NCBI RefSeq assembly: GCF_964188315.1
Contig: NC_135671.1
Coordinates: 39,060,001-39,124,000 of the forward strand
DNA: 64,000 nt
Source: Podarcis muralis
Lineage: Eukaryota
Direction of reading: 5' to 3'
A model generated the notes under the pieces. The model searched no databases. It worked only from the letters and a program-made list of their open reading frames with translations, and was not told the origin of the DNA. Shown here one piece after another: positions 37,201 through 64,000 of the stretch (position 1 is its first letter; every line of letters starts with the position of its first letter). The translations under genes and the position numbers were made by a program.

Positions 37201-40200
37201 TTTCATAAATAATCTAGATGTGTTATAAACAAATAGCACTTAAATCAAGAGCACGTTGGTTGCCTATGAAAACAGAGTAATAGTTGTAAAACCTGAAAAA
37301 GCTGCAGTCCTAATGGGGATATTGCAATTCTCCCTCAATGTCCTTGAGGGAGAATGATAGTGCTATAGATAGTGCTATAGAAGCAATGATAGTGTTATAG
37401 AAGCATTAACATTTCAAACAGGGCAGTAGTAGTTTCCCCCTCAAAGCCCTACGGATGCATAAGGGCAGACTGGTCATAGGGGAAGTATGTCATTTTACTC
37501 CAAAAGCAGCAGGTGATCCCAAGAGAGCATTTACTTGAGGCAGGTATATGCTGCTGTCTCTTTCTGCCCACACTGCTAATTCTAGGCAGCTGTGAGTGGG
37601 TCTGGTTATCAGTAGCAGAGTGAACACACCATCTAGAGCCACTCTTGTTACACTGTGCTCTGCATTCTACCACTGAACTTCAGTACTGGAAAAAGGCCTT
37701 GCAGGTGTGCCTTGCTGACATTCTTGCTCAGATAAAATCTTATTACTGCCCCCCCTCCCCAACCATCACAATGAAGCCACCACACAGCCTCTTTACCTTT
37801 GAATGGCCCTCCTTTGATTGTGAGAGCCACCTTGCCTTCCTGGGTCAGATAGCCAAACCATTCACCTGCCTGTGGGTCACTGAACTAAGAGAAGAACAAG
37901 CAAAGATGGTGAAACTATGCGTATCAGATTATAAGATGATCTACAGTGTGAGATGTGAGCTATGGAGTGGTTTTAGGTTCCTGGTGCTACTCCCATAGGT
38001 TAGGAAGATGACGGTCACCATATTGACCAGTGGAAGCTGCCTTATGCTGCACCCAAGGAGCACCCAGCTCTGCAAGGTCTCAGGCACCGCTTCTTTCCCA
38101 GCCCCCAGAGCCTGTGACCAGGAAATGCACTTTCTTCAAACCTCATCTCACCACCTCTGCTCTAACTTAATGGCACCCCCTGCCCTCCATGGCCAGCCTT
38201 CAAGCTTACCTTGGCAAAGGCATATTTAGCCACTTGGACAAAGCGTTCCAGGAGCTCTTGGTCTCGAGTCTCAGCAAAGCCCATCAGAAATGCAATCATG
38301 GCTTCTGTGTGTGGCCACCAAAGCTTCATTTTCCACTCTAACTGAAGAAGAGAGAGGGGGAAAGTTGGGGGGTGGGAGGAAGCAACCCAAGAGATCCCAG
38401 GAGGAGGGCAGTTGTCAAATGCACGGTGAATGTAGGCTTTAGGGTCCAAGCTTCTGTACCTGCGTTGGGCAGAGGCCATCCACATCCTGGAAGGTAAAGA
38501 GTCCACCATGTTCAGGGTCCCAGCCCAGACGGAACGGCTCCTTCATGAACTTCTCCACAGCCTGGGCCACGAGGTCCGAGTCCTGCTGGCGCTGCGCGTA
38601 GCGGAGCAGGAACCAGCCTGCTTCAATCGCATGGCCTTAGAAACAAAAAATGGAGAAGAAACACCCCAGTGCTAGCTCAGAGTTCTGGGGCAGGCAACCT
38701 ACTGCCCTCAGACTAATTCCATGCAGGGGGCAGAGGGAGGGAAGGAGGGAGGGGTGATCCATCCACTCAGCACTGGCATGCAGCTCCCGGCAGAGAATGC
38801 TGAGGAAATGCAGCCCTTGGCAGGAAAAAATGGCTCCCACCCCATCCCAAGGCAGACTGATTATTTTATTTCTATATCACTTAATATATTAAAAATATCT
38901 CTAATAAGTGTACAGAAAATTGACATAACAACAGACAACTTACACAAAATATTACAAAAACACACATACAGAAATGTTACAGTAATACAAAGTTACTAAT
39001 ATATAAAAACCAGTATAAATTCATTTTCCTTTTGATACACCCTTCCTCTCTGTCTCCAGTAGGCCTGGGTGATGCATCAATACATTGCCCAGGACTGGTA
39101 TGAGGGGCAGACAGCAATGGCAGCTTCACTCAGTGGCATATTGCAAGTGAAACCACCAATGCTCCTGAGTTCCTTAGCCACCAGGAGGAGAACAGGGAGG
39201 GATGGTTGTTGTTGATTTTTTATTATAAAAAGTACTAATAATTTTGGTTAAACACACATACACATAAATAAGGAGAGCTAGAGAACCTGTGGTCAGGCCT
39301 ATGCAGGTTGTGGGGCAGCTGGGTCCACTTGCCTTGGGCCTTGGAGGGCTGGGCTGGCCGTGGGGTCCTGCCAGGGGCTTGCCAGACTTACACTGTCATG
39401 CTGAGAACAAGATCCTTGCCCCAGGCCTCAGGCAAGCTCTGCATGGGCCTGCCTGTGGCTCTCCAGATGTTAGTGGGCTCAAGTTCTCCTCAGCCCCAGC
39501 CAGCGTGGCCGATGGTCAGGGATGATGGGAGTCGTAGTCCAGGAGCATCAGAAGGAACACAGGTGGGGTAGGCCTGGGCAATGTATCAATTCATGAGGGG
39601 CAGACAGCAATGGCAGCTTCACTCAGTGGTATATTACAGGTGAAACAGCCTCCTCCTCAGTTCCTTAGCCACCAGTGCCCAGCGCGCCAAGGGAGAAACA
39701 AGCTGCAGCCGGGCACTGGAGGCAGAGGGACTCAGGGGCAGCGGCAGTTTCACCAGCGATATCCTGCTGAGTGAAGCTGCCGTCCCACTTTGCCCCCAAA
39801 TCGGCGCAGAGGGAGAAGCATGCTGCATCGGAGAGGGGCCAATACAGCTTGTTCCTCCCTTCACTTCTTTAAACTGCTTGGTTGAGAAGCATACACCTGC
39901 CATTGCTCAGCCAGGCAGTTTTATGGAGCCCCCTACACGCCACTGGCTTGCACCAGCTGGTGGCAGGATGGGGACTCTGTGAAACTGTTCCCGCTTCCCA
40001 GCTGAGCAGCCTGTCTCTCTCTTGCATAAATTGGGGATGGGAGAAAGAAAACTGTCACAAGGGGCAAGGGGGCTGTGGAGGCAGGGATGCTAGTAAGGAG
40101 CTGTGCCAGGGTCTAAGTGCCAATCTTTGCAGTATGAGAGGGTAGCTATCTGGGCTGCACCACTTCAGACTGCAGAGGACTGTGTACTTTTGAAGGCTCC

Positions 40201-43200
40201 ATGTAAAGACTCCCTGCACGTAGCAAGTGAGCACGGCTAACAGTAGCCCTGACGTGCCAACCCCCAACAACCTGGCAACCTCCAAATACTTTGGAATATC
40301 CAACACCCCCCAGCCCCAGCCAGCACAACCATACTGGTTGGGGCTGATGGAAATTGTAGTCCAAAACATTCTGGTGCAGAGGCACCAACTTCTCCAGAGG
40401 ATTGAGGGGACCTGATGCAACTTTGTGCAACATTGCAAGAAACCAGGGGGCAGAGCCAAACATCCTCTGAAAATTGAGGGGGCTGACATTGGGGGGGATG
40501 TCAAAATTGTCTCGGCCCCTAGGAGTCACCACCTATCTTATGGTGGGGGCAGGACATACCAGGCTGGCAAAATCTGAACTAGTTGGGCGTAGCCAGGATA
40601 TTTGTTAGCGAGTGCAGAAACTCAGTAAGCTATATATTTTTATTGATTTTTATTGATTTTGGGGGCAGCTGCCCCTCCCTGTCCCCTCTTGGCTAAGCCC
40701 ATGACTTGTTACATTAAAAATATGGTCCCTGCAATCTACAGTGGTGCAGTGCAGAGTTCCACCGCCTGATCCTGTGCAATCCAGGGCTGGAGAATGTGTG
40801 GACCTTGAGGTGTTGCTGGGAGTACAGTTCCCATCATTCCTGACTGTTGGCCCTGCTGCTGGGGCTGATGGGAGTTGATATCCAACATCTGGAGAGTTAC
40901 AAATCTCCCAGCAATGGAGTGCAATGCATACACCACCCAACTCTTCATTCAGGACCCTAACCTGTGGGTCTGACAGAGATATTTTCAAACTTTGCTCTAC
41001 TGCTAAACAGGCTAGAAATTTGTTTGCTAAAAGTCTAGATTCCTGGTGTTCTGGCTAACATGAAATTCCTCAGCAAAATATACGCTGCTGCACTTGACTC
41101 CCAAAGCATCCTGGCTCTTGGTCTCTTCTTACCAGGATTCTGTTGTCTTCCCAAACACCCTGGCAACTCCTCGCCCTCTTCAGAAACGTTCTCCAACACA
41201 GCAGCACCATCCCTCTGTAGCAAAATAAGAATTCTATTATAAAATGTATCAAACGTAGACAAAAGCAAGACTAAGGAGCGGGGGGGACCATTCCCACCCC
41301 TTTACCTGCACGTGCATGAGGATTCGCTGAGCAGACCAGCCTCCCAGCTCACTGAACCGGCTTGCAGCCTCTGCATCTCCTTCTGACAGCTGGTCCACCA
41401 GGTTGAGGAGCATCATGGGAACAGCCATGGAGTCATGTGGGATTGCCCCCGCCAGCAGTGGGCGTCCCAGCTCAGAGGGATCCTCCCTCACCCAGTGCAC
41501 AATGGCCTCCATCATTGCCAGGGCTTCCCTCTGCCAACAGGAACATCATTACAACCTACGAAAATACCCATTAGCCAAGTGGAAACCTAAGGCTAGGGCT
41601 GGTCCCACTCCCACAACATCCATGCCTGGAGTCCGGTTTCCCACTTCTCCAAGGGACTCAGCAGGCCTTGGCCAAACTCATTTGCTCACTGCTCAGGCTT
41701 CATCAGGGCTGATCGGCAGGGAGGGTGAGAGAGAGCAAGTGAAGAAGCCAGATAGCTGCCCAACAACCAACCACTCAGCACTCCTCCAACCAACAGAGAT
41801 ATGCGTTATAGTAGAGTTCCACTACCCAAGAGAAAAGGGTGAGAAAGAGCTGTCGCTCTCATGTGTTGCTTGAAGGCATCTGGTTGGCTAGTGTGGGAAA
41901 GAGGATATGGACGAAGTAGGCCTTTGGTCCGATCCAGAAGGGCTCCTCTTCCGTTCTTAAGCGCTCTTCTACAGAGGCAGAGCAGAGCCATCATGGTTAG
42001 TGGGCACTGATAGCCCTCGCCTCCTCCAAGAATTTGTCTAATCCTCTTTTAAAGCCATCTAAGTTGGTGGCCATCACTGCCTCCTGGGGGAGCAGAGGTT
42101 CACAGCGGGCCCCACAGCACCTCCCATGGACCAGTACTTTGGACAAGGGTCAACCCTACACAAGAGCAGACTCAACCTGCTGACCAGCCTCTTCCCCTAT
42201 GTAGATGATGGCTATTCTTCTTCTTGTTCTATCAACGGAACTCCAGTATCCATAGAGACAGGAAGACGTCCCTCAACCGCAGCACCATGAGGTAAAATGA
42301 GCTGGTCTCTCCACTCTGGGCCCAACCCTACAGCTGCGGTTTTATCAGCCATGTGCTAGGAGCTGTACCATAGCTTTGGGGAAAGGGTATTTTTGCTGAG
42401 GTAATAATCAGAGGGAGAAGAGAGGGAGGATAAGCAGGTTTAGATGCTCCCTGTTCATAGAAGGAGGCAGGCAGGCAATCAGGACATCTGTATCCAGCTC
42501 TCCTGACCTCACCTGGTAACGAGGTTCCCCAGTTGCTCGTCCAAGTTCATCCAGCCCGAGGACATAGAAGCACTCGCTGAAAATGGTGCGCTGGATTTTC
42601 ACAGGGCGTCCATCGCGAGTCAGGACAAAGGCACACTTCTGCGAAGGTGGGGCCACTCGCGCATGCGCTAACAGGAACTCCCCACCTCAGGGAAAGAAGT
42701 AGATTGGAGGAAGGCAGCTCTGCCCCTCTCTGCTACTGGCAACCAAATACCCAGAGCCCTTGGGCCAAGACCCCCCCCCCCAACTTTTATACTTTCTCCA
42801 GCTGGTCACAACCAGGGATTGAGCTATGAATTGGGAAGCCCCAGTACAAATTGCGCCTCTCCCACAGATGCAGTAGGTGAAGAAGAAGAGTTTGGATTTG
42901 ATATCCCACCTTTCACTCCCTTTAAGAAGTCTCAAAGCGGCTAACATTCTCCTTTCCCTTCTTCCCCCACAACAAACACTCAGTGAGGTGAGTGGGGCTG
43001 AGAGACTTCAGAGAAGTGTGACTGGCCCAAGGTCACCCAGCAGCTGCATGTGGAGGAGCAGGGAAGTGAACCCAGTTCCCCAGATTACGAGACTACCGCT
43101 CTTAACCACTACACCACACTGGCTCTCCTTAGGCAAAATCTCTCAGCCTCAGGCTCACTCTCGGGGGGCGGGGGGGGGGGGGCGGAATGGTTTACCATAC

Positions 43201-45296
43201 AAGGAGTACTCAGTTAACAGGAAAGGCTAACTGATTAGATTATGATGATGATTAATTGTGGGGAGACAACCCCTATAATCCCACCACCATTCCAAAGCAT
43301 CAGAACTTTCAAGCGTCTCTCAGCCCTCATCTCAACTCCCTGTCCCAGTCTACACAGACCTCTGTCTGCCCACCCAATATTATCCTTTCTTTGCCTTCAT
43401 TCCCAAATCCCATCCCTTCTGTACACAAGGTGGAAGAAGTTACCTGCTCGGGCTGCCTGCAGGAGCTCAGGGCGCCGGAATCTTGGTACTTTTCGATACA
43501 GCCGACTGTACATCCACACCTGTTTGGGAAGGGATGGAGAGGTAACCTGGGCCCTCTAGTCTCATGGCAGACATCTGCCTTGGCTAAGCCAGGGATGAGG
43601 ACATTTGCTCACTCCAGCACTCATCAGCCCCAGCCAGCAAGGTCAGTGGTCAGGGACGATGGGAATTGGACTCCATCCATTCGTGGAGGACCACAGCTTT
43701 CCTTTCCTTGGCTTAAGCCCCAGCACTGATGTCTGCCATTCAGGGTATGGCCTGTGAGCGTGGCTCTCTGCAGGCCTGGCCTATTCTTAACCTCTAAGGA
43801 GACAGGTGCTGGACCTCAGACTTGCTTGGAAATTCCTCGTGCAAAAACTTTCCTAATATGGGGGACTGATGGGGGAGCTGCAGTGTTGAGGCATTCTGCA
43901 CATGCTCAGAGAGACTTGTGCCATTTATTTATTAAGTTTGCTTTACCTGTTCATTCCAAGCTTTAAGGCCAGCACTGAAACCAGATTCTGAGGTCAATTC
44001 TGGCAAGCCAGGTTCCAGAGAAGCTGGCCCTGCCCAGCCTCATTTCCCACACCAGCCCCAACCACACAAAGGGGATCCCAACAGAAAATCTAAAAAGGTT
44101 TCCAAAATCCATGGCCCCTGAGGACCCCTACCTGCCGGCCTTGCAGCCAAACGTATTTCAAGTCATCATAAACTTTCCCATCCTGGCCCAGACATGTAAA
44201 GAACCCCCTAGAGAGAAAGAAGAGGCAGGGGTGAGAACCAGGAGGGGGGGGGCACAATTTCCTAGAGGAAAGGATGAGAGCAGGCCGGGCAGAGAACTAC
44301 TGACTAAAGAGGAACTTGTCGTAGGGCGTGGCTGAGTGGGGCTCCCCATAGCCCCTCAGCCAGCACAACAAATGGCCTGGGAAGATGGGAGCTGGAGTCC
44401 AAGGAGTTTTGGAGATTCCCCCACCCCTGGCCTGGGAGAAGTAAGACAGGAAGCTGCCTCTGGCAGTGTCTGGAGTTAGAGCTAAAGCAGGCGCAGCAAA
44501 CGCGGAATGCCTTGAAGAAGGGCAGGCAGATCTGGTTCACAGAGCACCATTTGCCAGGACATTCTGCTCCGCAAGCCCCACGGAAATGGAAGGAGAGCAT
44601 ATCTGGGGACAGCAGCACCTTGCCCACAGCTCACATTTGTTTCCATGAAGCTTGCAGAGGAGAATTTCCCAGTGGAATGTCATCCATGCTGGTCCAAGGA
44701 GCAACAGGGAGCCCTAAGCTCCGGGTAGTTCCCTTCAAGTCATGCATGACGTCACGTGTGAGTCAGGTGGGCACAGCCTCCCGAAAATAGTGGGCTAAAT
44801 GAAAAGGGTTGCCAAGCCAGAGGTGTCCCCCCCCCCCCCCGCATTAGAGGGTAGATTTGTCTGCCTCCGGCCATGTGAGGGGAGGGGAGGGGAAGTATCT
44901 CCTTGCATCTCAGTGGTATGTTCTACCCCCCCCCCTTCCTGGGAAGGGCTCCCCTGTTTCACATACCCTCTTCCCCCTCCCCATTTGGGCCGATTTCCTT
45001 AATGGCGTGTATAGCATCCCTATAAACATAACCTTCCCCCCCGCCCCATGTCGTGAGAGGGAGTCAGTGTGGTAGGTACAGGACTGGACTGCGGGAGAGC
45101 CGTGTTCAAATGCCCCCTCAGCCACAACCCAGGCTGGCTGCCCTGGGGCGACCGGGGGGGGGCCCTAGATGAATAGACAGGCAGCGATCCATCACCCGTA
45201 TTCTTCGTCGTGCGAATGCTGAAGCCAGAAATCCACCACGGCGTCCAGCTCTCGGGAGATGCGTCCATGCCAGCTCAAGAGCGACGCCAAATCCAT
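34217..45296 (-). CDS. RENBP: N-acylglucosamine 2-epimerase (renin-binding protein), 10 coding exons, 405 aa
   Basis: Exons 45296-45196, 44207-44132, 43519-43444, 42685-42513, 41530-41306, 41214-41133, 38635-38460, 38341-38210, 37884-37797, 34305-34217; phases are continuous. Motifs [46 protein letters not shown] and KGCFHVPR match human RENBP, including the catalytic His/Glu/His positions. Confidence 0.96.
34640..34777. mobile_element. Palindromic hAT-type MITE
   Basis: Near-perfect 28-bp TIR CCAGGCTTCCTCAACCTTGGCCCTCCAG / CTGGAGGGCCAAGGCTGAGGAAGCCTGG. Confidence 0.85.
34869..35223. mobile_element. Tc1/mariner MITE, third family, with CGCAAGACG internal repeats
   Basis: TA-CAGTGGTACCTCGCAAGAC...GTCTTGCGAGGCACCACTG-TA. 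Confidence 0.88.
35390..36580 (-). mobile_element. L1-clade fragment: ORF1 C-terminus and ORF2 AP-endonuclease N-terminus, degraded
   Basis: ORF 35715-36023 reads [15 protein letters not shown]...[14 protein letters not shown]...WCLMADWN (APE motifs); upstream [21 protein letters not shown] resembles L1 ORF1. Confidence 0.75.
36590..37139 (+). mobile_element. L1-clade 3' end with A-rich tail
   Basis: Frame-broken [21 protein letters not shown]...FVKDWK-type ORF2 terminus, pyrimidine-rich 3' UTR, AATAAA and A tail. Confidence 0.7.
38864..39055 (-). mobile_element. L1-type 3' UTR/tail fragment
   Basis: T-rich terminus ttattttatttctatatc and AT-rich 3' UTR typical of reptile L1 ends. Confidence 0.45.
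41865..42115. mobile_element. CR1 3'-end fragments in two orientations
   Basis: ggcatctggttggc...ggtccgatccagaagggctcctcttccgttcttaag abuts gaggcagagcagagccatcatgg...aatttgtctaatcctcttttaaagccatc. Confidence 0.6.
42879..43127 (-). mobile_element. CORE-type tRNA SINE (Squam3-like), full length
   Basis: Head GAGAGCCAGTGTGGTGTAGTGGTTAAGAGCGG, CORE gctgggtgaccttgggccagtcac, L2-like tail and (TTC)n end. Confidence 0.85.
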
Positions 45297-46120
45297 CCTC
45301 GCTGCTTTCTCCAGCGGCGATCCCTGTAGGGGCGCGAAGGTGCTTCTGGCCCAGGATCTGACCCCGAGAGGGGAGGGGGAGTCCCGAGACGCGCTGCCAA
45401 TGTCCGCGGGAAACTAGCATAAAACCACGCACAACGCCCCCCCCCCCAAAAAAACTTTAAAATTTACAGAAGTAGGGAACTGCTGGTCAGATGATTTGCC
45501 CGAGTCACCTGACACTAGCCCCACCCTTTCTCCCACGTGGGGGGGGGGCAAGACCCTGATTTGTTCCTTTTCCTCCGTTTCCATTTGTTAACCCTACAAC
45601 TGCCGTGATCCGGCCCAGAGATCGGCAGCTGGAATCCCAGAACAGTGATCGTGACAACAAAAGGGCAGCAATGAGGCACAAAGCAGTTAAAGGCTCCCAG
45701 TAAGGCTTCCTAACTCGGGTGGCTCCCCGCTGCCTCCTGCCCCGCTGCTGAGCGGAAGGGCCGAGGGGCGACTGGGAGCCGGGACGACCCCAAACGCGGC
45801 TGCGTGATGGCACCGCTACTGGGATGCCCCGCTCCTACGTCAGGGGAGGAATCCCCCTCGGCAGCAAAAGCCCAGCCGCTGCCGCCCCGTCCCAGGCGAG
45901 CTCTGGGGGGAGGGGGCGGTGCGTGTGCTTTCCCTCGAGGTCCACGTGGTTCGCTTCAAATATGGACCATCGCAAGGTGCCGAGGCATCCAAATAATCTT
46001 GCTGCCAATCTGGGGGAGGCGGGGAGGGACCTCTTGCTCTCTCCTACTTACTTCAGAGCCGCGTTTCACAGCTGGGGGGCGACTCCATGCGAAGGAGGCC
46101 TCGCGTGTCTTTAACAATTG
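45050..46120. promoter_or_regulatory. CpG island, RENBP promoter/first coding exon
   Basis: CpG enrichment around and upstream of ATG 45296; boundaries approximate. Confidence 0.7.
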
Positions 46121-48679
46121 GGCGAAAGCAGGAATTTAGTTGTTGTTATTTTACTTAACAGCATTTATATAACACTTGATTGCAGTCAAACCTTTAAGCA
46201 GTTTTAAAAACATTAAAAGTATCAATAAAAACAAAGAAGGATAAGCAGGTGGTTAAAATTAACAGCAACAAAATATCTAAACATGTAACTTCTACATGTC
46301 TAGGTAGGCTTTCCCAAAGCAAAAATGTTTTTAGCAGGTACTGAAAAAAGTACAGTAAAGGCAGTTGCCTGTTATCAATAGGCAACAGGCAGGGAGTTCC
46401 AAAGTGTAGTTGCTGCCGCACTAAAATACTGATTTTTCTTTCAACTGTGGAATGAGTATTATGTAGCACCTGCCACAGTGCCAGTTCTACAAATCAAAGT
46501 GGTCTGCTGGACATGTGTCAGGTAAGGCAATTGTGCAAATAAAAAGAATGCAGATTGAGCTTTTCTCAGCCCCACAGCAGGACAAACTGCCCCACCAGCC
46601 CCCCTCTTTTATGCAACTTTTAAAGATGCAAGAGACTTGTCTTCCCAAGAGGAGGCTGGGTAAAAAGAGGATTGGGTTCCTGCCAGGGGCACCATCTGGG
46701 GGGGCTGAAGCCCTCCCCGCCCCCAATTTTCAGAGGGGCCAGACTCCCTCAATATTCTGTGGCCTGCAAAGGGCCTCACCCAGCCTGTCTGTAGCTGCAC
46801 TGGGCCTTGTGGCCTCCTCCTGTCCTGTGACATCACATGTGCATGTTGTGCACATGATGTCATGTGTTTGCTCTGCCCCCCACCAAGTTGGAGGCAGCTC
46901 CAGCTTCTTTTATCAGCGGTACAGAAAAGGGAAATGCAGCAGATGTAGCTTACACAACAAGCTGCTCTGGCTGAAATTACCTACACAACAGTTAAAGGTG
47001 AAGGAATAGCCGCCGTCCTCCTCTTCTTTCTGTTCACCCTAACCCTACTTCCTTTGCATTTGGACATCCAAGGAAAGGCAGGTGGTCTACCGAGAGATCC
47101 CCTCCCTATCTATATTCCCATGCAGGCTTGTACACGTGCTATGGTGCAAGGGAGGTCACTCACTATCCTCTGCCCCATTCACTGGATGAATGTGCACACG
47201 TGGCAAAATAGATCCATGCGCATTTGTCACACATGATGGTGCACACAAGACACACTTGTGCGCCTTAAACAGCACCAAATAACCATCACACACTAACTGA
47301 TATGGTGCAAAATTATCTGGGAAGTTCTTGTGTGTAGGACACATTGAAAGTGGTGAGAGCATCCTTGACTGTTCCTCTGTGGTCTCCCCTACTATCAAAA
47401 TGTAGTTTGCAAATTCTGTGAGGCAGGGCCTGTCTGGCCCCTGGGTTTCCCCATATGTAATGCTTTATAAAGCTCCATGGCCTTTCCACACTTAACTTTA
47501 ATTATGTAACAATGCACATATTGTTCTTCTAAGATTCAACCTTTCCCCGCATTCCAAATGTACAGAAGCACATTTAGCTACCTAGTAGTGAGGAGCATAC
47601 ACAGCATTGGCTGAAGGTTGTGGGGTGGGACAACCATGGATTGTTCCAGAACTGAGCCAAGCTAGGTTTCCAGGGTCAGTGCTTCTCAAGGCATTCCTCA
47701 CACATCAAAAACAGGTGTTAATACGGCATTCCAGACCATGTTACAGTATATGTCTGAATTCACATGCATGTCCAGCACTCACATGTATTCATACACACAC
47801 ACCCAGAGATTTGGAATCTTTTGCTGGAGTTATAATGTGTACCCATTTACGAATATGTGTTTGCCTCTATCCCTGCTTAAATAAAACTCCTGACACCTAA
47901 TATTTAATTTTGTCCTGAGCTGGCGATCCTAAAGACCTCTTAAATGCCAGATGGGCAACCCAAATTTTTTTAGAGGCAAACAAATAGCTGTACATTAAGA
48001 GTCTTGAGACACACATTAAGAAAGAAAGCTTGGTTTATTATATCAAATGAAAATGACAGAATATACGAATGCAGTTTCAGAATCAGACAGGAAGGGAAAG
48101 GGCTGCCCAACAAGAGAGTTAGCAGGCACTGGCCAAGGGCTTAAGAAGACTTAGTTTGTGCCAGAACCAGAGGCTGATTGTGGTACTTGCAGAATGATTT
48201 GTTAAAACACGTATTTGCTTGTATCTGAGCATGTGCAGGGTGCCTTTTATTTCTCCCACCACTTGGATGAGCACAGCTGGGGGGGGATTGCTCGGACTTC
48301 CTTTCCCCCCTCCTGTGCAGCTGCCGCCTGCTCACTTAGCCTTCCCTTCTGGACCCAGGCCAGGCTGCCACTCCCTCGGATTGCTCAGAGGGAGTAGGTG
48401 AAGGGGTGGCAAAGAGGGGCAGCAAAGCAGGGGGCTGCAGTGGGGTGGGAGGGCCCTGCAGGGAGGGCTGAATGCCCCACGATGCGGACCCTGGATGCCC
48501 GTCCCACCCCATGGTTCCGAGACTAGGTTAAGGGTCAAGGGCAACGTTTCCTGAAAGCGCCCAGCACCAATCTCCGCAGAACTGTTGTGAGGATAATAGC
48601 ACCTGTGAACAGGTGTGTGAAGCTGATCTGATTTCTATGATTCATCTCTGTAGATCTTAATAAGCATTAAGATTGACTT

Positions 48680-49640
48680 AACTATGACATGCGATTCTCC
48701 ATCACGATCCTTGCTTCGCCTGGGCACAAGCCGGACCCCACCAGCCTCCCCTGAAAACGTGTCCGGAAGGCGCAGCCCCTCGCCCTTCCTCCTCCCTGGC
48801 GCCGAGCAGCCGACGGGGAGGGCGAGAGCGAGCAGCTGCGAGGAGCTCCAAGCAGCGCCCGCCCTTCTTCGGAGCGAGTTTGAGGGAGGCTGTGCCGCGC
48901 CGAGGGGGCTCGGGGGGGGGGGGCACGGCCGGGGAGGGGCTTCGGGGCCGAGGACTGAGCAGGGAACCCCCACAAAGGTCGCGGGAATCCACGCCTGGCC
49001 GCGGGGGGGGGGGTCTCGACGGAGGCTCCCGTTCCCGAGCTGCCCCCGTAGGGCTGCCCTCACCCGCCCGTCTCTCCGCAGGTTCTGGCGCAGACGCCCC
49101 ATGTTCAGACGTTCCCACCTCAAGATCCTGCTGATCGGCAATTCCGGGTAAGCACAAGGGGCGCCTGGATGGGGAAGGCAGGCCCGCCGGGAGAGCCGGG
49201 CTCCGGCGGCTAAGCGGGTGTCGGGGCTCCAGGCGGGCGGGAAGAGGAAGGCTTCCCGGGATCCTGTCCCCGTTTGGCAGCCAAGGGGTTAAGGCGGCAG
49301 GCGGAGGGGGCGCAGGGGGCGCCGCCGCGCAGAGGCAGGGGCAGCCCGTCCAGTGCAGCCCGGGGAGAAACTTCCGCGAGGCTCTGCTGCCTCCACAACC
49401 ACCCGCCCGGTATTCTCTGTAGCTCAGGCTGGGAAGCGTGCGGCCCCCACGGCCTGGAGCGCGGCGCCCGCTTGGAGAAGTCTTCTGGATTCGCTCCCCG
49501 AGCGCCTCAGTCTCTGAGATCCCGGCGCGCTGCACGCCGCTCTCCTGTCCCACCTCCTTCCAAGTCCTTAAAGTACCTGCAGCAAGTGGGACCACGTTGC
49601 AGCTTCCCGGGCTCCGTGTGTACCAGGACAATTTTATGGG
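48680..49640. promoter_or_regulatory. CpG island, promoter of the RAB7-like gene
   Basis: CpG-dense stretch enclosing ATG 49101 and the gtaagc donor at 49148. Confidence 0.75.
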
Positions 49641-52600
49641 GCGCAGCTGAACTAGACCAGCTGTTTGTTCCCAGAATTAAAGCAGATGGAAGAGGCAACA
49701 CCAAATAACTAGAGGCCAAGTCAAGTGACTATTTTCCTATGGACGCAGTGGTATTACCATTGCCTGAACCCGGAGAGCATCGATGCAATAAAAAGGTGCT
49801 TTTTAAGAAAAGAAAAGCCTGCAACCTGTATGTTTTATGCACAACTGTGTTTTGTTCTCTTCACATTATTTTGCCATTTTAAATATGTTGCATAATTTAG
49901 ACTGCAGGAGTACAACCCTCTTGAACTCAGTGGGATTTACCTCTGAGTAGACAGGTGCAGGGTCAGGCTGCAAGTCTGCACTTGCTAGTCATGGGGAGCT
50001 AAATGGAACATGAGAACTTACTGCATTTTTATTCAGCTTCCCCTCTAGTCGAGCATGCTTGAAAAATTAGCATAACTTCACAAGTGTTAACAAAAACACC
50101 TGTACATCAAAATACTCAGAAAAATGTGCTTGCTTAACCTTCCCCTATCAACCTGACTCTGAAGAGCCTGGTAGCAGCTGTCGTTGCAACTAATTTATTA
50201 AGTAACTACAGCTTTATGGCAGTGTAGTAATAATCCTTACTGTATAATTATAATTAACACTCACTTTCAACTTTTTATAACCATTATTTAAACATTTGTT
50301 TAAATAGTGTAGTTTTTATGTATTGAGTAAAATAATTTGGTTATTTCCAATATCTGTATCTAAACTCAAAATGGGCCTTAGTATGTGTTTAAGATATTAT
50401 GAATGCACACAACTGTCCAATGCAATGAGGATTTAAGATTTCTCATTTACCTTTTATGCCAAAAAGTAAGATAGTTAGGATTAACCTTTATCTACCAAAT
50501 GTGAAGAAAAACATACAAGAAGAGAAGGGCTCAAGCACTGCCAGACACAGTGCAGGCAAAGCACTGAATATCATTTTGAAACCATGTCAGTTGTTTGATT
50601 TTTGTCCTAATCATTTCAAACACAAAGCTTTGTACAAAAGTGACAAAGTAAAAAAAGGGCACCATCAGAAAAGGCTTCTGGAGACTTTGTACATGCAATG
50701 CCAAAGCATTTTGATGCAAGATATGCTTTTGCCATTGTTTGATTTTAAGCATATTTTACCAAGATGACTTATTTTGCCTTTGGAGTTGCATCAGCCATTC
50801 CTTATGCCTTTTTCAAACCTTTGTACTCAATAGGCCAATTGAGCCTCACACAGTGCGTTTCCTACAGTAGCCAACTAGATATTCCTCGGAAGGCCACAAG
50901 CAAATCATCAGACCTTCCCATCCTGCTGCTGTGCCCCAGTGACTGCTACTCAAAAGGCCTTTGCCATCTTACCATGGGATTCCCCACTGCTGCCACCAAA
51001 AAGGATTTATCACAAGGCTGTGTGCATGTGTGCAAGAGGCAGTTCAGGAGCAGAGAACCAGCTCCACCTCTGCAGCCCTGTGCTGGTTGATGAGGCAGCG
51101 GGGTGTGGGGGAGGTTACTGACTAGACCTCCGCATTTTAAAATGTCAACCGTCCTCCGTTCCCCACAGGGCGGGCAAATCTGCCCTGATGAACCAGTATG
51201 TTAACAACCGCTTCAGCAGTCGCTACAGAGCCACCATTGGAGCAGATTTCCTCAGCAAGGAAGTAAACATTGATGGACGCAAACTGACCGTGCAGGTAGG
51301 CTCAGCAGAGGCTCCCTGTTGGGCAAAGATCGCCCCCTAAGCTCATCCCATGTTACCCATTAAAAAAACCCTGTGCTCCAGCCTAGGGCAATTTTAGCAA
51401 CATACTCCATTTCCAGCTCCCATAATCCCTAAGCCATTGGCCATGCTGGCTGAGACTGGAGGGAGCCTTAACACCACCTGGAGGCCACAAGTTCCCCACT
51501 TCAGGTCTAAAATTATCCTATATGTGCCTTATGTAGCCAGAATGGCACCCTTCGTGCACAAGATGGAGGGAGCAGTAGCAGGGATCCAATTTCTGTACAA
51601 GCACCTATTTCAGGAAAATATTTAAAGGTGTGTGTGTAAGGGAGAGAATCTAAAATGGGCAAGTGAATTGACGGTTGTGCTCAGTGGCAATTGTGGTGGC
51701 AAATAAAATACAGGAAAATGGAACAGAATATTCTAGAAAAGGGGTCCTCTGGTCCCCTCAGTATGAGCACCCCAAATCTGCTATGTTTCGTTACAAGTGC
51801 CTTGTTTTAGCTTTATTGTGGCAGCCTTAAGAGAGTCAATAAGATACAGGCATTTGTGGACTAAAGCCTATCACCATGAGACAGGCCCCGGGTGGGGTGC
51901 CACAAGCATATTACAATGTGGACTCTAGCTATTTGCTAAAAATCAGTTCTTAGTTACAGCAAACACCCTTTCCCTTCTAGAATTAATGTTAATGACAATG
52001 CTGAATTCTTATTTCCATTTTTTGCAACCCCAATTTGTACAGAAGCAATATGCACAACTAAAAGAAATGAAATTTCAATATTGCTGCAGTCCCAAATATG
52101 CAGTGGCCCAACTCTTACGAATGAACACAATTCTCCATTGGGCTGCAAGGTCAACGTGACACACCTACACTTGGCCCTTCCTGTAAGGAGCTTACCATAT
52201 GGCTTCCAAAGTGATCTTCTATCTATGCAAAAGCTTACAAAGCTAGACCAGGTTAGCCTCAAGCTGAGCAGAATTTACACCACATGTGTTCAGATCATTC
52301 TTTGGGATCATGTTATCATTTGTTCCATGCAAAGTTTTATCAATTCATAGACAATTATGATGGCCAATGCCATACCAACAGGGCAAAATTAAACACCATC
52401 CATCCAAAAAAGCAAAAGGAAAAAAAACCAAGAGCATGGCAGAAAAGGCACCTTTACAGCAAACACCCCTGATCGAAGTGCATGAACCAAGATAGGGCCC
52501 CCCACCCCCACCCCCCAAAGATCCTTTACAATGCTAGCAGCCAATTTGGCTTGAGGAAAGGCTTCCAACCCGGAAGTTAGTGTGGGAGTGTGGTGAAGCC

Positions 52601-54963
52601 TGGGACGTGGTGAGAGGGAACATGGCGCCGAGCGGGCCGGCCTCGGCTGCTAAAAGAGAAGAGAACGCCATTATCCTAATTGGAGAGAGGGCTTAAGAGG
52701 AAGACGCTGTGTGGTGTTTAAATCCTGGATAAGTCATCGTTTGTGCCCAGGCTGCTGTCATAGAGGGCTGAGAGGCCAGTGGAGCCAGGACATTTGGCAC
52801 CCTACCCCCTAGACATCTTGAGGCTGTCACATTTCAATACTTCCCCTTGTGAAAAGCTTCTGCAAACTGGGTCCGAGGTGTCCACGAAAGACTGATGCTG
52901 TAAGTGGATTTTACTGCAGTGAAGAGGAAAACTTCACTATTATTATCCATCCAAGGAGCTTTCACCCACGGTGCCATCTTCTGGTGGTCTTAACTATCTT
53001 AGTTGTGTGTTAAATGTTATGTTATTTTAAGAATCGTATAATCCTTGGCCTGAGGAAAGTATGGGTCAGAACAAACGCTTGAGAGACTTTGACGAGCTTC
53101 CAACCCATATAGCAAACTAGTCGTGTCCATGTACGTCTGCACCACGCAGATCCAAGTTCTGTGACAAAGCTGAATTCAGCAGCTTGTGTGGTTTCTCATT
53201 TTGCACAATTGTCAGTTTCCACTAATCATAGGAAGCAACACTCAACATGACAGGGCTGCAGTCCCCATCTAATTCAGTACTTTTTCTGGCTGCTGGTTTA
53301 ATCCAAGATTGCCAACTTTTATGGCAAAACAGCACATCACAGCACTCGTTTTCTGGGTGCCAGTAACAATGGACAGCTGGCACCTGAAATGTAGAAGTAT
53401 GGATCATTGTTCTGCACTCCCAGAAACGTAGCTTGGGAGATGGGGTTCAAGAAAGCTGCTCCATCTCTTTATAGCCATTTGGTATTATATACATTCTGAT
53501 GTGTAGATTAGTTGTTGGCAGAATTGTGGCAGCCACTCAACCCTGGTCAAACATGGTGGAAGAATCCAGAACATCAATTGAATAAAGAAACGGGAGACTC
53601 TAGTCCACACCGTCATATGGCATGGTATCCCCTGATGCCCCCAGACAGCAAAACCTATGCTTGCTAACCTTTGTGAGAACCAAGATTAATGGAGGTAAGT
53701 CACCAAGGACCCAGGGATGTCTTGAAATCAAGGTCTCAGCTTCTACCCCTTCTTGCACCTAGATTTGGGACACAGCTGGTACAGAAAGGTTCCAAGCACT
53801 GGGGACTGCCCTCTACCGGGGGTCAGACTGCTGCCTTCTCGTCTTCGATGTCACATCTGTCAGCTCTTTCCACGCCCTGGAGAAGTGGCACAAGCAGCTC
53901 CTGTTGCAGATTGAGCCAGAGGAAGAGCCCACTTTCCCCACTGCTGTCATTGGGAACAAGATGGACCTGGAGAACCGTGAGGTGGGGCAGAGGTGGTTTT
54001 AGGGGAGTGCCACTGGTTCACCCACACTGGCTGCCAAGCTAAGGGGGCCCTGCAACAATAGCACACAGCGGAAGGCGAGAGGCGCCACCCCCACCCTCCA
54101 GATTTTGGCATTGCACAGTGCACTGCTGAAATTTTAAAGCCCAAAGTCTGCCACTGGGCAGGGCTACATATGAAGCCAGGTGCAGGGCACAAGTCCACAT
54201 CCTGTATGGCTCTCAGACATATTGGGTTGGAGTAGCTAGGGGTCAGAACTCTTTAGGGGTTCTGTTAGGGGGCTGTAAGAACTCTTTGCAATGACTCAAG
54301 GAGATGGGGAGTGGACAGAAAGTTCAGGGAATATTGTATCCTAATGAACAGCTTCACCAGAGGACTTTGGCATAATTGTTGAGCAGAGATGTAGAATTTG
54401 GTATCTGGGGAAGAATTATATTATCTTAAAGATTTGCTCTCATTGTGTACACTAAAAAGACCACAAGCTTTTTGATTAAGAGCTGCAGATGGAATTGGGA
54501 AGAGAGCAGAGTATGCCCAAGCCCTGTTTTTCTCCAGGTGTCTTCTGAGGAAGCAGAAATGTGGAGCAAGCTTCATGAAGCCAAATACTTTGAAACCAGC
54601 GCCAAGGAAGCCACCAACGTGCAGGAGGTGTTTGAGTGGGCCATACGGGCCGTACTAAAGAATGTAAGAAACCTCATTTTCAGCCCTGCCCTTATAAGGC
54701 CCCAGACAGACCACATACCTTTGAGATTGCTTTTATCCCTGAAAAAAACACCTCTCCCAGCTTTCAACTTTCTTATAAGACAAAGTCCTTCCCAACAGCC
54801 TGCATCTCATGCCCTTTGCCCATCTGCATCAACCACTTGCCCCCTCACCACTTTTCTTTTTGTTTCACCTCAGCGGAGGGTACCGGAAGAGCCACAACCG
54901 GACTCAGTTCACCTGGAGACCAGGCCACCAGAAGGGGCAGCCAGAGAGAAGTGTAGCTGCTGA
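49101..54963 (+). CDS. RAB7A-like small GTPase (divergent Rab7-family paralogue), 5 exons, 202 aa
   Basis: Exons 49101-49147, 51169-51295, 53763-53981, 54538-54663, 54874-54963 (47/127/219/126/90 nt; same phases as RAB7A, with the 127- and 219-nt exons equal in size). G1 GNSGAGKS, effector [10 protein letters not shown]3 WDTAGT, G4 NKMD, G5 ETSAK, C-terminal CSC. Open frame throughout, CpG-island promoter, AATAAA at 55203. Confidence 0.92.
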
Positions 54964-55202
54964 TCTGACCAAATACAGATGGGAAGATTCCTTCTGTCTG
55001 AGGGGGTGGGCTCTTCATGCTCTGCAATCCCGAAGGGTGAAAGTGCAACCCCACAGAACAGCCCCAAGGACATTTGGCAAGGCTGCAGCACACAGCTTCT
55101 GGAGCTGGATCCCAAGGTAGACCTTTGTTCTCTGGATGACACAGCCTAGCGCACTTGGGAGAGCTGGATCATATCCCAGGCTACTCTTCCCAAGCACATG
55201 GA

Positions 55203-55387: not shown

Positions 55388-56802
55388 TGTTCAAAATAGC
55401 ACAAAAACGACAGATACGCAGCACTAGGGTGAGGGGGAGCGGCGGGGTGGACAGCCATGGGGAACTCCTAGGAGGACTGTTCCTGTCTCAAAGGAAAATA
55501 AATGGGGTAGGAGAATAGGGTAGGAAGAATCTTAGGGTCTGAACAGGAAGGGGACACAGCGAAATACATTATAATACAAAAGACCAGGGCACAGAGCAAG
55601 TTGATGGGGAAGGGGGTCTGCTCCTGGGTTTGTTTGCTATTTTTTGGAGGGGGCCTGCTTTACCTGCCAAATCTCTTTGACAATGGAGAGGTAGGACATA
55701 GCAGTCAGTGCAGCTGTTTGCATTTCATTTTATAGCCTATTCCCCACCATCTCTGAAGAATAAGCCCTGACTGCTCTTCTCCCTTCCCCTCTGTGGAATG
55801 TACAGAGAGGCAGCGAGTGGAGGGGGTGTACATATTCCTCTGGAGTGGGAGGGAACCTAGATCCCTACCCCAGCCAGAGGGAAAGCTGTACTTCAACAGG
55901 CAAAAGTATTGTCCCGCAGTCTTGTTCCTAGCTTATCACCCTGACCTTGTGGGGTCAGACTCCATCCCTCCAAAATGTCTCCCCCTCCCCCCTAAAAAAG
56001 GGTTTTATATAAAACGATGGAGAGGAATGGCAAGGCATTTTTGCCTAGACATGCCGCCTTGTGGTCTGGAGAGGGAAGAGCAGAGGGAAAAATCAGCTTG
56101 TGCTGTTAGAGGAATTGCTGCATGTGTAGAGAAGAGGGGGGTGGGTTGAAGCCACAAGCGCCCTGGGCTCAGCATCTGAACAGCTGTTGTAGAATGAGCT
56201 GCATCCCCCCACCCACCCCCAAAAGTAGCTGCATTGGTGGTCCAACCACCTCCCGCCCCTCCCTCCCCAAACAGCCCCTCCCTCCCTCTCTCTCCGTTAC
56301 CAACGCAGACACTAAAAACTAAACTGAGGGAGAGGGTCTGTACAGAGGCAAGAAATGGAGGCAGGGAGAGTAACCCTCCCACCCCCAAGACACAGGATGC
56401 TGGGGTATACAAAAAGAACTTCATTCCTGTAACTGCAACTTGTAAAAAACCCAACAGCCCCCCTCCCCCCATAACAATTCCCCCCTCCAAACCCACCCCT
56501 AACATCAGCGTCCATGTTAAACGGGGCAGCAGCAGGGGGCAGGGGAGGAACTCCAGTCCTTCTCCCCCCTCCCTAGGCTGGGGCATGGCATGGCATAGCA
56601 TGGCATGGCACAGCGATGGCCCCTGCTTGGGGCTCCCTCACTTGAGCCTCTGCGTCCTCCGCCCCAAGAGTCCAGCCCCGTGGTGTGTGAAATGTGCTTT
56701 CAGCGGTTCCATCTTCCTCCACACAGAGGGGCGGCTGACTGGCTGGGGGTTCAGGTGGAGGCTGTGGAGCAGGCAGGAAGAGGGGAGAGCAGGGGATGCC
56801 CT

Positions 56803-63813
<7,011 letters not shown>

Positions 63814-64000
63814 CTAGATGCTGGGGATGCTGGACTTGGCATCAGAAGGCTGGGCGATGGAAAGGCAAACTTGGCATCATCTTTGGAGAGCTACTTTACT
63901 GAGTCTGTCTCTGCCTCACAAGGTTTGCTAGCAGCTTTTAGGCAACTTGCAACATTAAGGCAGAATTGCTTATGCTGGATCAGACTGAAGGTCCATCTGG

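Follow-up and report, generated by a model that had tools for sequence, protein, structure and literature searches.

A 64,000-nucleotide stretch of the Podarcis muralis genome (NCBI RefSeq assembly GCF_964188315.1, contig NC_135671.1, positions 39,060,001 to 39,124,000 of the forward strand), referred to here as the window and numbered from its first letter, contains a Rab gene in which threonine occupies the place of the catalytic switch II glutamine (WDTAGTERF). The gene is intact, with five coding exons that encode a protein of 202 amino acids, and RNA data bear out its transcription and the modelled splicing. It is identified here as the Rab7c orthologue of a lacertid. Rab7c is paralogous to RAB7A, predates the radiation of the jawed vertebrates, and still adjoins HCFC1. 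The coding sequence extends from 49101 to 54963 on the plus strand, stop codon included. All introns begin with GT and end with AG, and the protein ends in CSC. The NCBI annotation of the lizard gene is 'Rab-7a-like'. The coding exons and the threonine codon are as follows, with residues in RAB7A numbering.

49082..49147, plus strand: first coding exon, with the ATG at 49101; encodes the N-terminus and two bases of the P-loop Gly
51169..51295, plus strand: coding exon 2; encodes the remainder of the P-loop (GNSGAGKS) and switch I with F33, Y37, R38, and T40
53763..53981, plus strand: coding exon 3; encodes switch II (WDTAGTERF), the Cys-Cys pair, and NKMD (G4), and corresponds to RAB7A residues 61-133
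53781..53783, plus strand: threonine codon ACA, at the position of RAB7A Gln67
54538..54663, plus strand: coding exon 4; encodes the G5 motif ETSAK
54874..54963, plus strand: coding exon 5; encodes the hypervariable tail, the CSC prenylation motif, and the stop codon

Transcription was examined over positions 49050-55049 using two stranded bulk RNA-seq runs carrying the same species label and the contigs of two further runs. All four coding junctions are present in both RNA-seq runs and in contigs. The junction from 49147 to 51169 has 16 and 18 reads, the junction from 51295 to 53763 has 11 and 17 reads, the junction from 53981 to 54538 has 20 and 3 reads, and the junction from 54663 to 54874 has 13 and 18 reads. 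Coverage is restricted to the exons, and it runs on beyond 54963 into the 3' untranslated region. First mates fall on the minus strand, the pattern that plus-strand RNA gives in most stranded libraries.

The threonine lies near the start of coding exon 3. The plus-strand sequence at 53763-53810 begins ATT TGG GAC ACA GCT GGT ACA GAA AGG TTC, and the exon is flanked by AG (acceptor) and GT (donor). Its translation can be aligned with RAB7A residues 61-133 with no gap (E = 4e-26), which places the ACA codon on Gln67 of RAB7A. An earlier note, made from the letters of the window, had claimed this substitution (DTAGTE) in a RAB7-like protein and had held a sequencing error to be unlikely, and both claims are borne out. 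The step from glutamine (CAA or CAG) to threonine (ACN) needs two base changes. The codon is covered by approximately 20 reads in each of the two RNA-seq runs with zero differences from the window, and none of the runs differs there. Elsewhere in the exons four sites (53798, 53816, 53858, and 54651) distinguish the RNA runs from the window, in each case by a synonymous third-position change, which identifies the runs as other individuals. Because these individuals agree with the window at the threonine codon, an assembly or sequencing error is ruled out. All four RNA runs compared are fixed for two of the synonymous differences, 53798 A>C and 53858 T>C.

The first orthologue query was the open frame spanning exon 4, intron 4, and exon 5, of which exon 4 alone scored. 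It matched squamate proteins from Podarcis lilfordi, Zootoca, Pogona, Phrynosoma, Naja, Candoia, Varanus, and Salvator, and every squamate match that covers switch II contains WDTAGTERF. A profile was built from three squamate proteins, and the motif was read in its best 120 matches, which can be sorted into two groups. The threonine group contains squamates, echidna, frogs, a salamander, caecilians, bichir, paddlefish, gar, many teleosts, sharks, and rays, and has WDTAGTERF together with a P-loop of the form GK-S. The glutamine group contains all RAB7A-type vertebrate sequences, hagfish Rab7, and all invertebrate, algal, and protist Rab7 sequences, and has WDTAGQERF together with a P-loop of the form GK-T.

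At least 13 squamate species have an intact threonine-type gene, as does the echidna, whose protein is intact save for an annotated isoform insert. No bird, turtle, crocodilian, or therian sequence is among the best 120 matches of the profile; this absence, which is not proof, suggests that Rab7c was lost in these four groups.

A MAFFT alignment was made of 81 near-full-length threonine-type and 12 glutamine-type sequences. Residue 67 is the sole position that is 100% fixed within both groups and yet differs between them. The earlier note had called for an alignment of orthologues, in which glutamine would have marked a private variant or an assembly error. Threonine is present in all 81 clade members, from sharks to lizards, and an orthologue with glutamine was not found among them. 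The threonine is thus not a lizard peculiarity, as that note had treated it; it is the hallmark of an old paralogue of the jawed vertebrates that already bears the name Rab7c (PMC2693434). The further clade-fixed differences listed from the alignment are T22S, K38R, K32R, F77L, and I13L, with residue 38 being Arg in the window and in 76 of the 81 clade members and Lys in the other 5. D16N is nearly fixed.

The protein retains the features of a Rab of the Rab7 type. The Pfam Ras domain (PF00071) is matched by exon 3 of the window alone at E = 3e-20 and by the Pogona orthologue at E = 2e-53. RAB7A is the best match among solved structures (E = 1.5e-62, 214 bits), followed by Rab9A (194) and Ypt7 (177), with the next Rab, Rab30, at 119. 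The G motifs of the window (GNSGAGKS, T40, DTAG, NKMD, and TSAK) are conserved in 79 to 81 of the 81 clade members, and judged from these motifs all nucleotide- and Mg-binding residues are kept (P-loop GxxxxGKS, T40, DTAG, NKxD, and SAK). The CXC prenylation end is CSC in the window and is present in 75 of the 81. Phe33, Tyr37, and a basic residue at position 38 are kept, the last being Arg in place of the Lys38 typical of Rab7. The Cys83-Cys84 pair, the hydrophobic triad (F45, W62, and Y78), and the switch II residues beside the threonine are invariant. The glutamine that follows DTAG is missing from the window and from every clade member; it is regarded here as a catalytic trait and not as a mark of membership, since Rap is likewise without it.

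The effector surface of the RAB7A type, formed by L8 in RabSF1 and by V180, L182, and Y183 in RabSF4, is not retained in Rab7c. These four residues of RAB7A are presumably the RILP contacts of Wu et al. 2005. The window protein begins MFRRSH, with the His aligned to L8. The clade has His or Thr at this position, His being the commonest (49 of 81). The VELY segment at 180-183 of RAB7A is not conserved. Residue 72 (codon 53796-53798) is Ala in the window and in most squamate Rab7c (QALG), where RAB7A has the phosphorylated Ser72 (QSLG); Ser72 is kept in Pogona, Gekko, and all non-squamate Rab7c.

A tree was constructed with IQ-TREE from 53 rows under the LG+C20+F+G4 model. The threonine set is separated from all glutamine sequences by a split with 100/100 support that is present in 100% of the bootstrap trees, and the clade is placed inside metazoan and vertebrate Rab7. 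The topology within the threonine set is that of the species tree: chondrichthyans, then ray-finned fishes, then amphibians, then echidna and squamates. The support for this set and its agreement with the species tree indicate that glutamine was replaced by threonine once, before the jawed vertebrates radiated.

Exon structure is conserved along with the protein. The coding parts of the five exons are 47, 127, 219, 126, and 90 nucleotides in length in squamates, and the middle three sizes (127, 219, and 126) are also found in gar and Xenopus. The threonine codon varies by lineage, being ACA in squamates, ACC in gar, and ACG in Xenopus. The ratio of nonsynonymous to synonymous substitution rates (dN/dS) is 0.09-0.11 (pairwise Nei-Gojobori among the window, Pogona, Varanus, and Gekko). 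The low dN/dS, the clade-wide fixed threonine with its varied codons, and the conserved structure show that Rab7c is a functional gene under strong purifying selection, in which the threonine itself is kept by selection.

An artefact, a private variant, or a decaying pseudogene copy of RAB7A was also considered as the source of the threonine and can be excluded with near certainty. Nothing in its favour was found, and it conflicts with the agreement of the RNA at the codon, the intact frame, the canonical splice sites, the dN/dS of approximately 0.1, and the presence of threonine in 81 of 81 clade members. A retrocopy is ruled out because the introns lie at conserved positions.

Rab7c was named in 2009 by Mackiewicz and Wyroba (BMC Evol Biol 9:101, PMC2693434). 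That paper describes a well-supported clade of two 'highly diverged' sequences (Danio and Xenopus tropicalis) at the base of vertebrate Rab7a, with His at position 8 and a synteny of its own; the clade was taken to have probably arisen through the early vertebrate genome duplications and was presumed to have been lost in amniotes. Since the protein of the window falls together with the Xenopus and teleost members (100/100) and carries the His at position 8, it is Rab7c. The intact squamate and echidna genes set it apart from the 2009 account, as they bring amniotes into the clade, and for squamates and the echidna the presumed amniote loss does not hold. A term search of the paper found no mention of residue 67, glutamine, or hydrolysis, and the available part of its text does not name the syntenic genes.

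In the literature searched, Rab7c as a vertebrate clade appears in the 2009 paper alone. The motifs WDTAGTERF and DTAGTERF returned no match, and DTAGTE matched one Rap2 paper and unrelated text. No usable review of Rabs devoid of the catalytic glutamine was found there either. The universality of the catalytic threonine across the Rab7c clade is apparently undescribed. The present analysis adds this universal threonine, the persistence of the gene in squamates and a monotreme, a transcript-backed gene model, and the list of clade-defining substitutions.

Rab7c can be compared with three sets of known proteins. It resembles RAB7A and Ypt7 in its best full-length structural match, a four-residue insert before NKxD, the CXC end, and F33, Y37, and T40. 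The RAB7A positions associated with Charcot-Marie-Tooth disease type 2B (L129, K157, N161, and V162) are also kept. It differs from RAB7A by Q67T (100% against 100%), the change of L8 to His, the absence of VELY at 180-183, and Ala72 in most squamates, and identity between the two is about 55-60% overall, with about 58% to solved RAB7A.

Rap1 and Rap2 share with Rab7c a natural threonine for the catalytic glutamine in switch II (DTAGTE), and for hydrolysis they need a GTPase-activating protein (GAP) to provide the catalytic residue in trans (PMC2265111). Unlike Rab7c, they belong to the Ras/Rap family, have a RapGAP with an Asn thumb, and end in CAAX and not in CXC. Use of such a GAP by Rab7c would be conjectural.

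Tetrapod RAB7B and zebrafish rab7ba and rab7bb are further Rab7-type paralogues, and automatic UniProt names give several Rab7c proteins as 'Rab-7b'. RAB7B differs from Rab7c in forming a separate clade with its own synteny in the 2009 phylogeny (PMC2693434). Identity of Rab7c with rab7ba or rab7bb was rejected. Zebrafish rab7a, rab7ba, and rab7bb are approximately 88% identical to one another (bioRxiv 10.1101/2023.03.09.531857), and the cyprinid 'RAB7b' sequences recovered here carry glutamine. The zebrafish triple mutant described in the same preprint as a 'complete Rab7 loss' covers rab7a, rab7ba, and rab7bb only, and leaves the Danio Rab7c aside.

The gene is flanked on both sides by minus-strand genes, and two alternative non-coding first exons lie upstream of the coding sequence. 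These features are as follows.

37650-45540, minus strand: RENBP neighbour, upstream of Rab7c, with Pfam GlcNAc_2-epim matches at 38165-38636
45640..45699, plus strand: alternative non-coding first exon 1a, with an exact 3' end at 45699, an approximate start, and the donor gtaagg; head-to-head with the minus-strand RENBP gene
48580..48612, plus strand: alternative non-coding first exon 1b, verified in its 3' part alone, with a donor GT at 48613
55400-64000, minus strand: HCFC1-type neighbour, tail-to-tail downstream of Rab7c, with an fn3 match at 60169-60423

The order in the window is RENBP, Rab7c, HCFC1, and the window is collinear with the flanks of the Pogona locus. In Pogona and Varanus a gene with GlcNAc_2-epim (RENBP, minus strand) is followed by the Rab gene (plus strand) and by a gene of approximately 2,200 amino acids (minus strand). 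The matching large neighbour in Xenopus laevis carries Kelch_HCF domains, which identifies the neighbour as HCFC1. In gar an unannotated neighbour of approximately 2,180 amino acids has the same position and orientation, and in Gekko the downstream neighbour is on the minus strand. The HCFC1 neighbour is thus common to lizards, Xenopus, and probably gar. The conserved synteny of Rab7c is found in this tail-to-tail HCFC1-type gene, present in the window, Pogona, Varanus, and Xenopus laevis.

Exon 1a is supported by 14 reads of run X23, in which the acceptor at 49082 is joined to letters that match only 45676-45699. Exon 1b is supported by RNA contigs of runs X1 and X2, which join 48580..48612 to the same acceptor. 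A few hundred bases separate the 3' end of exon 1a (45699) from the open frame at 45195-45413, the first coding exon of RENBP on the minus strand, and this closeness suggests that Rab7c and RENBP share a bidirectional promoter.

Variant splice forms of the coding region were also noted. One form found in the contigs of run X1 lacks exon 2 (49147 joined to 53763), with the loss of 127 nucleotides and a frame shift, at a depth of 29 against 81 for the normal junction. This form was not seen among the raw reads of the RNA-seq runs examined. The NCBI isoform X1 of Podarcis lilfordi is 221 amino acids in length and gains 19 residues by the use of an upstream exon 4 acceptor (window 54481-54537). 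Junction reads for this acceptor were not found in the RNA runs examined.

Rab7c is thus expressed and constrained and has no cis-glutamine, and it is predicted to be a prenylatable, nucleotide-binding Rab. The reading favoured here, with a probability of roughly 60%, is that it would act as a switch of the Rab7 type that cycles, with a GAP and not intrinsic hydrolysis setting its off-rate, and with a set of partners shifted from that of RAB7A. The protein would be a membrane-bound GTP/GDP switch loaded by a tri-longin guanine nucleotide exchange factor (GEF), either Mon1-Ccz1 or, given the Y-R motif, a BLOC-3-like complex. As in Rap, the absent cis-glutamine would lower intrinsic hydrolysis, and active Rab7c may persist until it meets a GAP with its own catalytic residue, such as one of the TBC dual-finger type. 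Rab7c probably has a different effector set from RAB7A, because the RAB7A subfamily surfaces have diverged (L8 to His, and VELY 180-183 gone).

Known systems provide parts of this scheme. Mon1-Ccz1 holds F33 and Y37 and puts K38 into the Mg site, and the substrates of tri-longin GEFs share K38 or a Y-basic motif, with Arg in Rab32/38 (PMC5216073, PMC12383261). The earlier note had pointed out that Rap GTPases naturally carry threonine at the glutamine site and that TBC-domain GAPs give a glutamine in trans, and published work upholds both statements. In Rap the residue is Thr61, and the catalytic residue comes from the GAP (PMC2265111). TBC GAPs insert an Arg as well as a Gln, and the Rab's own glutamine is flipped away in the complex (PMC6176412). 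They can stimulate Rabs that lack the glutamine, at a rate up to approximately 10-fold lower (PMC6176412, PMC3919270). The kept F33, Y37, and Arg38 of Rab7c would fit ongoing activation by a tri-longin GEF, with either candidate.

Several points weigh against the GAP-limited switch. The kinetic effect of the threonine in Rab7c is argued by analogy, and threonine is polar and might still help to place the water. RAB7A Q67L is the standard GTPase-deficient, 'locked-on' form, and the earlier note had argued from it to a slow-hydrolysing, GTP-biased protein. That step is reasonable but less secure than it was put, and the safety of arguing from Q67L was overstated, because switch II glutamine mutants differ between Rabs. 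The mutation cuts basal hydrolysis of Rab5 more than 5-fold, whereas in Rab1 and Rab35 basal hydrolysis changes less than 1.5-fold and GAP action and, for Rab35, GEF action are impaired (Langemeyer et al. 2014, PMC3919270). The Rab1 and Rab35 results favour a reading in which Thr67 is kinetically near-neutral and Rab7c cycles like an ordinary Rab7, the threonine together with T22S, K38R, and F77L marking an altered interface for GAPs, GEFs, or effectors, and hence partner specificity, and not a long-lived GTP state. Its premise is that intrinsic hydrolysis of Rabs is slow anyway and that TBC GAPs bring their own glutamine. The contact of the Rab's own glutamine with only the GAP backbone in the TBC complex agrees with it, as do the six clade-fixed substitutions clustered in the P-loop and the two switches, and the divergence of the RabSF1 and RabSF4 surfaces. 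The Rab5 result and the GTPase deficiency of Q67L speak for a kinetic effect, and the near-neutral reading, the main rival of the favoured one, is considered rather unlikely. Rap, the natural threonine precedent, needs a special GAP and also speaks against neutrality (PMC2265111).

Rab7c might instead be constitutively GTP-bound and have no GAP, with control by expression, prenylation, membrane extraction, or degradation, in the manner of the atypical Rho proteins. The catalytic glutamine has been missing throughout the history of the clade, as would be expected of such a protein, and loss of the cis-glutamine strongly cut TBC-stimulated hydrolysis in Rab1 and Rab35 (PMC3919270). However, T40, the GEF-contact residues F33 and Y37, and the basic residue at 38 are kept under selection, which is expected only if exchange, and hence cycling, matters, and TBC GAPs are able to act on Rabs that lack the glutamine. 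A permanently active form is judged improbable because the exchange-related residues are still constrained. The GAP-limited cycling switch stays the favoured reading. A bolder proposal, again by analogy, can be made tentatively and falls short of an even chance. Rab7c could be a naturally Rap-like Rab7, a fourth switch of the late-endosomal/lysosomal type with negligible intrinsic GTPase activity, turned off wholly via a trans-acting and possibly dedicated GAP, and overlooked in zebrafish and Xenopus Rab7 genetics.

RAB7A controls the traffic of late endosomes, lysosomes, autophagosomes, and mitochondrial contacts. A conserved second Rab7-type gene with a residue other than glutamine at position 67 in most non-therian vertebrates is a natural experiment on the role of the cis-glutamine in a Rab. 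The published view of a loss of Rab7c in amniotes is corrected, the gene being retained by squamates and a monotreme, and Rab7 loss-of-function work in zebrafish and Xenopus may omit a paralogue, Rab7c.

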